64,000 nucleotides of DNA from Piromyces finnis finn (Eukaryota; Fungi; Neocallimastigomycota). Location: the NCBI GenBank assembly GCA_002104945.1, contig MCFH01000047.1, forward strand, positions 124,001 through 188,000. The letters run 5' to 3'. Positions 32,462 through 45,464 of this stretch are shown in pieces; within the stretch, counting starts at the first letter, position 1, and every line of letters starts with the position of its first letter. A program made the translations under genes and the position numbers. The notes beneath the pieces are model-generated. The model searched no databases, had not been told where the DNA came from, and was given only the letters and a program-made list of their open reading frames with translations.

Positions 32462-32557
32462 TTTAGTAACATTACGAATAAATTTATTGGCATTGAGAAT
32501 ACCATTCATTTTAGTAACATTACGAATAAATTTATTGGCATTGAGAATACCATTCAT
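32462..32557. repeat. 48-bp tandem duplication spanning the last codons and stop of xylanase A
   Basis: tttagtaacattacgaataaatttattggcattgagaataccattcat occurs at 32462-32509 and 32510-32557. Confidence 0.93.
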
Positions 32558-33476
32558 TCATTCTAACACATGTACCTTGTTGACAACATTTAGCTCCATT
32601 GAAACCATTACCTCCACATTGAGCCCATCTTGCTGCACAATTACCTGCATTATTATTATTATTATTGTTGTTATTATTCCAATTATTATTATTATTGTTG
32701 TTGTTGTTATTGTTGTTGTTATTGTTATTAGTGGCATTACTACCATTACCAATATATACTTTAGCATATGGGAAATCGGCTGTACCACTAGTACCTGATC
32801 CATTACTACCGGCTTCTCCTAATACTTTGGCTTCATGCAATTTACCTAATGTCATTCCAAGCTTTTCCCATTGTTGGAAGTGTGCTGTAATATCAATCGT
32901 ACCACAATCACGAGCATTCTTACGAACACTAAAGTATTGTTTGAATGTGGTATTTCCATCAATCGATGGTCCAGTACGAGTATTTTGATAAACCGTGTAT
33001 ACTGCTCCATCAATAGTATAATCTCCTTTCTTGACATTACCAACCCAATCTCCTGGACGATATGGACTAAGCCAATTGTCAACAACGTAGAATTCAACTA
33101 AAGGACTTCGACTCCAACCATAAATACCGACAAATGAATAATCAACATTTGAGATGTTTTGTTTGACGAGTTTAAAGTCAGCATACAAATGTCCGATTTG
33201 TGAATGCGTTTTAGTACTGTCGAAAGAAAGACCAGAACGACATAAATAATCCTTTGCATTTTGGAATGAGCAAGAGAAAGAACCATCAGAGTAGAAAGTA
33301 GCACTATTATTACCACTATCAGCCCATAATTCATAACCAATTCCACCAATAGAACCAACCTTATTACTTGTTTCTCTAACACTTGTACCTGAGTGTCTAG
33401 CTGAACTGCAGAAACTTTGAGCAAGTGTAGTAGAAGCTAAAGATAAAACAACAGAAGCAACTTTGACGAATTTCAT
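32532..33476 (-). CDS. GH11 endo-1,4-beta-xylanase + Asn-rich linker + CBM1, copy A
   Basis: Signal peptide, GH11 motifs with catalytic glutamates (PLVEFY, VLGEAG), poly-N linker and C-terminal CBM1 (WAQCGG.GF.G..CC...C...NEWYSQC). Intronless. Confidence 0.97.
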
Positions 33477-34388
33477 TTTTAATTTTTTGATTTTTAATAT
33501 ATTAATATTTTATATAAAAGAAAGCTTAAGCTTATAATTTACAATTTCTAATTTCAAATGTTTGAATTATTTTAATTTTTATTTTTATAATTACAATAAT
33601 TATTTACAAATATTTTTTTTTTTATAATTCTATAATTCTATTATAGTTTACTTATATATTTTACAACTAAATATTATTAATTAAATTAATAATGAATAAA
33701 ATAAAATAAAGAAGGAAAACTGACTCTTTTTATATATATATATATTTTTTTTTAAATTGATTCTTTAATGAGAGGGAAAAATAAAGGAAAAAATAAAGGA
33801 TAAAAATGATTAATATTAAAATTAATAAATATTAAATATTATTAAATATTATATTAAATAGTTTATTCATAATTTTTTAAATTAAAATTAATCATAATTA
33901 AAAATATTAATTTATATTAAATATTAAAGAAAAACAATATTTAATTTTCCCTATACTTTTTATTCATAAGTCATAAGTCATTGCTTTTGTTTTTTTTATA
34001 ATAATAAAATAAGAATATACAAAACTTAATTCTATATATATTAATAAATAAACAAATAAATAAATAAATAAATAATTGAATGAAGAAATGATATATTTAA
34101 TTATTTAATAAAATATTTATTTTTCTATTTCATTTCATTTAAAAATAATAATTAAAAATATTATTTTATAAAATGTTATTTTATATTATTTTATTTTTTG
34201 TGTACCTTGTATAAAAGTTCAAAAGATAGATTTAATTTTAATTATCAAATTATTTTATATTCTATATTTAAAATCATAGATTTAATAAATAGTTATATTA
34301 AATCTAAATAATATAACAAATTATATGACTTTCATCAAAGCAGTGAGTAATAACACAACATGTTTTCAATGCATTTATTGTTAATGGC

Positions 34389-43535: not shown

Positions 43536-44474
43536 ATGAAATTCGTCAAAGTTGCTTCTGTTGTTTTATCTTTAGCTTCTACTACACTTGCTCAAAGTTT
43601 CTGCAGTTCAGCTAGACACTCAGGTACAAGTGTTAGAGAAACAAGTAATAAGGTTGGTTCTATTGGTGGAATTGGTTATGAATTATGGGCTGATAGTGGT
43701 AATAATAGTGCTACTTTCTACTCTGATGGTTCTTTCTCTTGCTCATTCCAAAATGCAAAGGATTATTTATGTCGTTCTGGTCTTTCTTTCGACAGTACTA
43801 AAACGCATTCACAAATCGGACATTTGTATGCTGACTTTAAACTCGTCAAACAAAACATCTCAAATGTTGATTATTCATTTGTCGGTATTTATGGTTGGAG
43901 TCGAAGTCCTTTAGTTGAATTCTACGTTGTTGACAATTGGCTTAGTCCATATCGTCCAGGAGATTGGGTTGGTAATGTCAAGAAAGGAGATTATACTATT
44001 GATGGAGCAGTATACACGGTTTATCAAAATACTCGTACTGGACCATCGATTGATGGAAATACCACATTCAAACAATACTTTAGTGTTCGTAAGAATGCTC
44101 GTGATTGTGGTACGATTGATATTACAGCACACTTCCAACAATGGGAAAAGCTTGGAATGACATTAGGTAAATTGCATGAAGCCAAAGTATTAGGAGAAGC
44201 CGGTAGTAATGGATCAGGTACTAGTGGTACAGCCGATTTCCCATATGCTAAAGTATATATTGGTAATGGTAGTAATGCCACTAATAACAATAACAACAAC
44301 AATAACAACAATAATAACAATAATTGGAATAATAACAACAACAATAATAATAATAATGCAGGTAATTGTGCAGCAAGATGGGCTCAATGTGGAGGTAATG
44401 GTTTCAATGGAGCTAAATGTTGTCAACAAGGTACATGTGTTAGAATGAATGAATGGTATTCCCAATGTCAATAA
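43536..44474 (+). CDS. GH11 xylanase-CBM1, copy D
   Basis: 312 aa. The Asn linker is two residues shorter and the protein is otherwise the same. Confidence 0.97.
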
Positions 44475-45464
44475 ATTTACTCTCAATGTCAATAAATTTA
44501 TTTTTAAATAAATTTATTTTTAAATAAATTTACTCTATAAATATGAAGAAGTTATAAAATCAAAAATTTCAATGTAAATAGAATACATAAAAAGTAAAAC
44601 ATAAATTTTAACATTTTAAATGAATCTTATTAATTGTAGAATTTGAATATATTGTAAAAAATAAAAATATAACATTAAAAAAAATTAGTAAATAATTTTA
44701 TATTATGTAGATTTTAATTTTTTTTTTTTTTTTTTTTCATTTAATAAAGATTTTTAATATGAAAAAATATTCTACTTTTTTTTTTTTTTAATTAATTTAT
44801 AATAAACAATAGATTTGTTTAGATATATTTTGAAACATCCATTGATATTTTACATTAAAAAAAAAAAAAATAAGTATATAATAAAAGTAACTAAATTGGA
44901 TTTTATTATAAATATATCAATACTTTACAGATAATAAATTTTTATTCTATTAGACATTTAAAATAAGTTTATCAATGTATAATGAATTTATAATGGTAAT
45001 TATATTATCAATCTATCAAATAATATAATTCAAATAATATAATTTATGGTAATTATGCTTTACCTTTACTTTTAATGTAAATAAAATTAATCTTGTTAAT
45101 CTATGCGAATGCTTTATATATTGTTTATATTTTATTTTTATTTATTTTATTTTTTTTATTAATTACATTTTTTAAAGTTTTTTTTTTTTACTTTATTTTA
45201 ACTCTATTTTCAATTTTTATTCTTTGTATTTTTTATTAAATTATAAATATATATATATATATATTTACATTTATTATTTATAATAGTTTAATTATTTTAT
45301 TTTATTTTATTTTCTATAATTTATTATCTTTTTTTATATCTATTACAATTTTTTTAATTTTTTTAATATTCTATTTAAAAAAAAAATCATATATAACATA
45401 GATTATATCTATTTTTCTTATGAATAGACATAATTTAAAAATTTATATCAAATAAATTATTTAT

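Follow-up and report, generated by a model that had tools for sequence, protein, structure and literature searches.

A nested inverted array of four near-identical GH11-CBM1 xylanase genes in the anaerobic gut fungus Piromyces finnis

[quoted passage not shown] The xylanase array described here shares with them inverted arms of more than 99% identity, a unique spacer and intact multi-copy genes (PMC8600007, PMC8327919), and the mosaic make-up of one arm is a hint that the arms have exchanged sequence. It differs from them in scale (kilobases, as against tens of kilobases to megabases), in lying on an autosome-like contig of a fungus and in carrying a secreted enzyme as cargo. The human palindrome P1 has smaller palindromes within its arms. 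ODIRA inverted triplications have been described in yeast at SUL1 and GAP1 (PMC4689423, PMC10766183, PMC11790251) and are interstitial amplifications of alternating orientation that retain the distal sequence; the present array would resemble them in this if A is counted as an older copy. Copying in inverted orientation is an established route to the amplification of a useful gene, and the present structure is a further member of a familiar kind, carrying a well-known enzyme. Anaerobic gut fungi are valued for the great number of enzymes with which they attack plant fibre, and the expansion of these families has been little described; a literature search turned up no account of palindromic gene arrays in Neocallimastigomycota.

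The window, meaning the whole 64,000-nucleotide stretch that was analysed, is from Piromyces finnis, the assembly of which was built from PacBio reads only (Falcon/FinisherSC). Four intact GH11+CBM1 xylanase genes were located at 32369-44741 in the order A(-), B(+), C(-), D(+). The array lies at ∼156-169 kb of contig C175, which is at least 330 kb in length, and is far from the contig ends. Features of the array, in window coordinates, were as follows.

32369-34324, minus strand: unit A, made up of gene A, its ∼850-nt promoter arm and a 3' UTR that has diverged
32462-32558, minus strand: perfect 48-nt tandem duplication private to A, running from the last codons through the stop codon into the 3' UTR
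32532-33476, minus strand: gene A, intact GH11+CBM1 xylanase gene, 314 aa
34325-35508, no strand: inner spacer s, 1184 nt, 11.6% GC, asymmetric, unique to the locus, with a pure (AAT)35
35509-37823, plus strand: unit B, comprising a promoter arm, gene B, a 250-nt 3' flank found also in C and D, and a 270-nt segment (37553-37823) common to C only
36353-37297, plus strand: gene B, intact, 314 aa
37824-39176, no strand: centre of the outer palindrome, 1353 nt, 17% GC
39177-41490, minus strand: unit C, mirror of unit B, from which it differs by 4 substitutions and 1 indel
39703-40647, minus strand: gene C, intact, 314 aa
41491-42689, no strand: inner spacer s', which is s in reverse complement, 1199 nt, carrying a pure (AAT)39
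42690-44741, plus strand: unit D, a mosaic with A-type spacer edge and promoter variants and a B/C-type 3' flank
43536-44474, plus strand: gene D, intact, 312 aa, with a linker two Asn shorter and two private synonymous changes

Self-BLAST and a repeat finder returned a 5.47-kb outer inverted repeat that pairs 32369-37823 with 44623-39177 at 98.6% identity over 5474 aligned columns, its arms separated by the unique 1353-nt centre. The final ∼24 nt of the arms were already degenerate. Each arm contains an inner inverted repeat, 32369-34324/35509-37446 around the 1184-nt spacer on the left and 39448-41490/42690-44725 around the 1199-nt spacer on the right. The likeness of unit A to the other units peters out at ∼32369, and the homology of unit D stops at T20+CATT (44718-44741), the counterpart of which in B and C is T8+CATT. 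All four copies retain their own ∼850-nt promoter arm, and AATAAA motifs were found shortly past the stop codon of gene B (37314, 37330 and 37346). The nested inverted array of four GH11-CBM1 genes, proposed in an earlier note on this DNA, was borne out by these searches and by Pfam. That note had also placed the inner spacer in both orientations, and s and s' indeed matched inverted only (global score 2331 inverted, 228 direct), with 2 substitutions, a 12-nt difference in microsatellite length and 3 single-base indels between them. The (AAT)n lengths that it gave, 35 and 39 units, are exact in the window (34389-34493 and 42508-42624), the microsatellites of a second contig covering the locus, C44, being too error-laden to confirm them. 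The centre contains no ORF longer than 48 aa, no tRNA and no Rfam match, and is unique in the genome except for contig C44. Centre and spacers are kb-sized, asymmetric, unique sequence and not adapter-sized, and the long inverted arms on either side of them reach the 99% identity or more expected of a gene palindrome. The neighbouring pyruvate formate-lyase (PFL) genes form a 3.1-kb palindrome of their own (self-BLAST). The two spacers, the array centre and the centre of the PFL palindrome were examined for hidden internal palindromy, and none was found.

In their promoter halves, A goes with D and B goes with C, in agreement with the earlier note. A T/A variant groups 34083 (A) with 42931 (D) and 35750 (B) with 41249 (C), and an extra 1-nt indel at 33623 and the sequences of the spacer ends give the same grouping. 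The indel near 33671 was correctly taken as diagnostic of this pairing but measures 3 nt (33671-33673) and not 2 bp. Private substitutions were located at 35585 and 37506 in B, 41180 and 40009 in C, and 43366, 43470, 44318 and 44342 in D, which also has a private 6-nt in-frame deletion removing two Asn codons. The 3' ends depart from this pattern: the ∼250-nt 3' flank of D is of B/C type (98-100%) and, because the promoter variants and spacer ends of D are A-type, D is a mosaic. A matches the consensus exactly for ∼1780 nt, after which identity falls sharply at its stop codon to ∼85-90% over ∼165 nt of 3' UTR, followed by unrelated sequence. Had C-spacer-D been a plain inverted copy of the entire A-spacer-B block, as was first claimed, the distal end of D would be that of A; the B/C-type flank contradicts this and points to an older copy with template switching or gene conversion. 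Of the duplication history put forward, the promoter pairing and the inverted spacer are retained, and the plain inverted copying of the entire block is not.

The flank of D was unrelated to 37553-39176 (score 57, shuffle mean 58), and the outer flanks of A and D gave a weak likeness of ∼300 nt at 71% (local score 101; shuffle mean 77, maximum 97). The 270-nt tail adjoining the centre belongs to a continuous 5.4-kb span of identity. Substitutions between copy pairs number 2-7 (A-B 2, A-D 4, B-C 4), which is too few for ordering events, and a two-level hierarchy is absent. With a dispersed paralogue on contig C167 (88% identical in DNA, 98% in protein) as the outgroup, one site favoured A as ancestral and one favoured B/C/D.

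A second symmetric GH11 array was located on contig C165 (233-245 kb), with the layout X(+) Y(-) centre Y'(+) X'(-). It resembles the array in the window in having four GH11 genes symmetric about a unique centre (757 nt) and near-identical mirror partners (X/X' 98.8%, Y/Y' 99.1%). It differs in its orientation (+ - / + -), in neighbouring genes that are only 95% alike (X/Y) and in non-homologous intergenic DNA. The C165 array is a form of the nested GH11 array that is older or has decayed further. Inverted GH11 pairs were also found on contig C154 (95%) and in the Piromyces sp. E2 assembly (Sanger/Illumina; 94%). The wider searches were made with the centre, the spacer tail, the outer flanks and the proteins. 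The C165 array and the PFL palindrome show that inverted gene arrays are recurrent in this genome.

The array is best read as a real, young nested palindromic amplicon, in which an older inverted pair was followed by replication-type inverted amplification turning in the existing palindrome; we assign this reading a probability of roughly 65%. The order of events, the mechanism and a dosage benefit are what we infer from the structure. An older inverted pair, A and a partner, would have come first, its trace being the diverged 3' UTR of A, where a divergence of 10-15% against <0.2% elsewhere means that A and B are not a simple recent copy pair. Inverted amplification by fold-back or template switching (ODIRA/MMBIR-like) would then have added two partner copies, with one turn-round within the present 1.35-kb centre. 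A second turn-round, in the existing A/partner palindrome, would have produced the reversed spacer copy and given D an A-type promoter edge fused to a partner-type body and 3' flank. The final junction, with the right flank, sits at the poly-T tract. A few private changes per copy would have followed, with arm-to-arm gene conversion possibly helping to maintain the likeness, and the immediate effect would have been a higher dosage of one enzyme gene.

As in ODIRA, B, C and D (+ - +) have one common 3' flank, and a turn-round within an existing inverted repeat predicts both the A-type promoter edge of D and the reversed spacer. ODIRA is expected to give 2n+1 copies, so the even number of four fits only if A is counted as older. 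Against the amplification model, the turn-round loops of 1.2-1.4 kb are far above the short interrupted repeats of ODIRA, the loops of which are tens of bp. D is also not followed by the 270-nt segment and centre that follow B, for which the model must assume one more template switch or a deletion afterwards. The mosaic D and the identity step at the stop codon of A would be produced equally by one template-switching event or by arm-to-arm exchange. Three simpler routes were rejected: tandem duplication of a gene pair, as both the spacer and the 270-nt tails occur in inverted and not direct orientation; breakage-fusion-bridge, as the spacers are kb-sized and unique genes continue on both sides within the contig; and simple ODIRA, as the last copy is without the right-hand sequence found downstream of the first.

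It is very improbable that the locus truly has fewer copies and that Falcon/FinisherSC unrolled or wrongly joined PacBio reads that were palindromic or chimeric. The assembly does rest on PacBio reads alone, and odd inverted joins do occur in it, as the left end of contig C44 shows an unusual fold-back (join at ∼24520-24560 of the window). C44 (28,038 nt, poorly polished) is collinear with window 24480-47590, whole array included, with 15 mismatches and 251 indel columns, mostly in A/T runs, over ∼23 kb. The only mismatch inside the array is a 2-nt AT/TA swap at 43430-43431, with none at diagnostic sites, and C44 carries all private substitutions, the 3-nt indel and the 6-nt deletion of D. Although C44 is only semi-independent, being built from the same read set and having the fold-back, this makes consensus error or a simple chimera unlikely and upholds the use made of the private SNPs, in the earlier note, against a simple read chimera. 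The copies differ by substitutions, a rare error type here (15 against 251 indel columns). Their spacers are unique, asymmetric and 1.2-1.4 kb long, as against a 45-nt adapter or a zero-length hairpin, and the array is interior to its contig with a unique flank of its own on each side. Older diverged arrays of like shape also exist. A missed SMRTbell adapter or a contig-end palindrome was rejected on the kb-sized spacers, the interior position and differences that are not random errors. One DNA run of the organism contained 87% of sampled words. The four-gene nested array looks real.

Two other histories would start from real copies. In one, a first inverted duplication made A/B, the whole A-spacer-B block was then copied in reverse around the centre, and the 3' end of D was later overwritten by conversion from B or C. 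This history is unlikely, even though it agrees with the orientation of the spacers, with the sequences at their edges and with each of the three promoter variants that give A=D/B=C, and the weak likeness between the outer flanks of A and D speaks for it. The full 250-nt B/C-type flank of D reaches the poly-T junction with unrelated DNA and leaves no A-type remnant; a conversion tract requires homology on its far side, of which there is none past ∼165 nt; and the 3' UTR of A is far more diverged than the remainder. A sharp identity step at the stop codon of A would also be expected if an old four-gene cluster were held near-identical by continuing concerted evolution, with no recent amplification. 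The C165 array, with 99% gene islands between non-homologous intergenic DNA, provides a parallel for this, and the C167 paralogue, more conserved in protein than in DNA, indicates long purifying selection. Set against this are 5.4 kb of unbroken identity, which include the 270-nt tail and non-coding spacers of 10-12% GC with 2 substitutions; conversion tracts so long would be re-duplication in effect, and this history is very improbable.

Under the preferred reading of a young amplicon built on an older pair, the array, with its readable junctions, makes amplification by inverted duplication testable outside yeast chemostats, tumours and sex chromosomes. It is possible, and we put it forward tentatively, that template-switching inverted duplication is a main, self-feeding route of recent gene-family growth in P. 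finnis, perhaps in AT-rich anaerobic gut fungi generally, with palindromes nesting at existing turn-round sites and arm-to-arm exchange keeping the copies identical. The xylanase array would then be a case caught in the act, and the PFL palindrome and the C165 array other stages. With four near-identical copies, knock-outs, the mapping of reads and the counting of expression for each gene are all confounded, and such arrays may vary in copy number during culture.

Genes A-D encode a GH11 xylanase that is predicted to be secreted, has no dockerin and ends in a cellulose-binding CBM1. Exact-protein look-ups of the 314-aa and 312-aa products returned no match in a search set that may lack the records of the source genome, and metagenome scans with the protein and with a 38-nt word from the centre were both blank. 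All four products carry Glyco_hydro_11 (E 9e-40) and CBM_1 (E 5e-10) in Pfam. PF00457 scored 136.7 bits (cut-off 27) over profile positions 4-175 of 178, and PF00734 scored 39.5 bits (cut-off 20.6) over the complete profile at C-terminal residues 283-310. The catalytic domain (residues 20-244) is 81% identical to that of the xylanase XynCDBFV of Neocallimastix patriciarum (PDB 3WP4; E 6e-127). The motifs PLVE(F/Y)Y(V/I)VD and VLGEAG, the Glu residues of which we take to be the GH11 nucleophile and acid/base, are both kept in the alignment and identical at the Glu positions. The P. finnis protein has a C-terminal Asn-rich linker and CBM1 where XynCDBFV has dockerins.

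Self-BLAST and a repeat finder located an outer inverted repeat of 5.47 kb (32369-37823 versus 44623-39177, 98.6% identity) with 1353 nt, the centre, between its arms. Each outer arm contained an inner inverted pair of ~2 kb, with a spacer of 1184 nt (s, between units A(-) and B(+)) or 1199 nt (s', between C(-) and D(+)), each unit being a GH11+CBM1 xylanase gene with its flanks. The two spacers could be aligned as reverse complements only (score 2331 inverted, 228 direct), with two substitutions, three single-base indels and a length difference of four AAT units between them; their A-side and D-side ends were the same, as were their B-side and C-side ends. 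These results confirmed the nested inverted array claimed in the earlier note, whose counts for the pure (AAT)n runs, 35 and 39 units, were also correct. The open reading frames were intact in all four units, giving identical products of 314 aa for A, B and C and a product lacking two linker Asn for D. AT-rich promoter DNA at 35968-36016 was common to all four. Inside spacer s, a piece of ~145 nt (34773-34917) gave 72-74% matches at many genomic places, often paired ~6.1 kb apart on one strand in the manner of retroelement LTRs; alternatively, it may be just low-complexity AT-rich DNA.

The array lay well inside its contig, which is at least 330 kb long, and was flanked by different unique genes, on the right one for a protein with three CBM10 dockerins and on the left pyruvate formate-lyase (PFL). 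PFL gene copies in the window, 820 aa each (n = 3), were located at:
1702-5104, copy 1
24347-27436 (-), copy 2
28608-31699 (+), copy 3
The centre and spacers were kb-sized, were found at this locus only and were without self-complementarity. Together with the interior position and unique flanks, this points against an artefact. The right-flank gene, 45465-48590 (-), encoded 1041 aa, with the three dockerins N-terminal and followed by ~six repeats of ~145 aa for which no Pfam match was found; the corresponding DNA repeats had a period of 429-444 nt and were up to 99% identical.

The P. finnis assembly (56,455,805 bases, 232 contigs) was built with Falcon, FinisherSC and Quiver, and PacBio reads were its only input (PMC5622200). 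GC content in the window was 10-18% in intergenic DNA versus ~36% in coding DNA. A second, redundant contig of the assembly, C44 (28 kb), was collinear at 5071-28038 with window 24480-47590, a span running from the PFL pair through the entire xylanase array, with its four genes, two spacers and centre, to the right-hand gene; it derives from the same reads and has a folded-back left end, and is hence not fully independent. C44 was poorly polished, with 251 indel columns, mostly in A/T runs, and only 15 mismatches. Inside the array the mismatches amounted to a single 2-nt AT/TA swap at 43430-43431, and none of the 15 hit a diagnostic site; C44 reproduced all substitutions, private as well as shared, together with the 3-nt indel and the 6-nt deletion of D. 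Since the mismatches were few, substitution errors are rare in such data and it is very unlikely that the private SNPs are consensus noise; their earlier use as an argument against a simple read chimera was upheld by their reproduction in C44. Sampled words were present at 87% in one P. finnis DNA run and at 17-19% in two runs guessed to be RNA, about what gene bodies alone might yield. The array has the appearance of a real, young, nested gene palindrome. At the left end of C44, positions 1-5117 were the reverse complement of window 24563-29722, with a ~40-nt asymmetric loop at the join and adapter sequence absent; it reflects either chimeric fold-back or, in some nuclei, an additional inverted duplication of the PFL pair.

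Variants were tabulated from the four units aligned in gene orientation. Over the ~1780 nt between the spacer edge and the stop codon, A matched the consensus. Private substitutions numbered two in B (35585, within that stretch, and 37506, past the stop), two in C and four in D, which also had three private indel events (loss of 6 nt in frame, and indels of 2 nt and 1 nt within A/T-rich runs). A was grouped with D, and B with C, by one substitution and two indels, and no substitution backed any other pairing. All coding differences were synonymous or in linker Asn codons. Past the stop, ~250 nt were common to B, C and D. B and C remained alike for a further 270 nt, up to the centre, whereas D diverged into unrelated DNA at a poly-T tract (T20+CATT in D, T8+CATT in B and C). 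With an A-type spacer side and a B/C-type far end, D is a mosaic. Divergence of A from B, C and D began inside the last codons, with ~165 nt that were ~85-90% alike before unrelated DNA; judged from its sequence, A retains the remnant of an older duplicate. A carried a perfect 48-nt tandem duplication (32462-32558) whose unit spans the stop codon, from eight codons before it into the beginning of the 3' UTR. At the same spot B, C and D had different small tandem repeats (2.6 copies of a 16-nt unit), which marks the stop-codon region as prone to slippage.

The earlier note had the whole A-spacer-B block recopied in inverted orientation as C-spacer-D. This history was supported in part: it accounts for the inversion of the spacer and for D having a promoter edge of A type, and A and D were 71% alike over ~300 nt of outer flank, slightly favouring an older outer pair but marginal in AT-rich DNA. 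However, it predicts an A-type 3' UTR on D, which was instead of partner type throughout 250 nt, the partner being A's presumed older inverted mate. The spacer and promoter edge are explained equally well if, as is more likely, replication-type amplification of the partner gave rise to the further copies. A turn-round inside the existing A/partner palindrome, like that of ODIRA (PMC4689423) or fold-back break-induced replication, would then produce the reversed spacer and the A-type edge on D, and the partner-type 3' UTR of D is as this amplification predicts.

Amplification of the partner also leads to the expectation of the 270-nt tail and centre after D, but both were absent from D's flank, and D's right junction would require either an extra template switch or subsequent loss of DNA at the poly-T tract. 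Simple ODIRA, for which continuation of the last copy into that tail and centre is defining, was rejected; ODIRA loops are, moreover, short interrupted repeats, whereas those of the array are kb-long. Because the distal flank is intact and the spacers are long, breakage-fusion-bridge was excluded. The substitution counts, as read from these copies, are too small for dating the steps.

Inverted duplicates were also found elsewhere. By self-BLAST, PFL copies 2 and 3 formed an inverted pair (3.1 kb, 99.6%) around a centre of 1171 nt, the arms reaching no more than 128 nt upstream of either ATG; copy 1 repeated copy 3 in direct orientation (99.2%) and extended 447 nt further upstream. Contig C165 (233377-245353) held four GH11 genes arranged symmetrically as X(+) Y(-), a 757-nt centre, Y'(+) X'(-), with identities of 98.8% (X/X'), 99.1% (Y/Y') and ~95% (X/Y). 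Its X-Y intergenic DNA was without homology to that of Y'-X', and the array was bracketed by a 3-kb direct repeat (228446-231435 and 247404-250419, 98.3%). Being strongly diverged, this nested array is not an assembly error. Contig C154 carried an inverted GH11 pair (95%). In Piromyces sp. E2, another species with a Sanger/Illumina assembly, KZ151016.1 13798-18032 contained two 221-aa GH11 genes tail to tail (inverted repeat 1124 nt, 94%), closing a series of GH11 genes that share one strand. The xylanase array adds a new instance to a known kind of structure. It is valuable mainly for junctions that are still readable and for being, apparently, one of many in the P. finnis genome.

The encoded enzyme is itself ordinary. 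Behind a hydrophobic N-terminus lay a GH11 domain, with a CBM1 at the C-terminus; the catalytic domain shared 81% identity with the Neocallimastix xylanase CDBFV, whose structure is solved, and retained both glutamate motifs, and GH11+CBM1 proteins were found in several anaerobic fungi. A fifth gene, a dispersed paralogue, was located at:
C167:1159842-1160783, DNA 88% and protein 98% identical to the array gene
Homology was confined to the CDS, and differences were nearly all synonymous or in the signal peptide or linker. Protein identity of 98% despite a 12% nucleotide difference points to strong purifying selection on the array enzyme. Four promoter-bearing copies should increase the output of one free, cellulose-targeted xylanase. 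AATAAA motifs lay immediately 3' of all four stops, which probably limits read-through between the convergent genes B and C.
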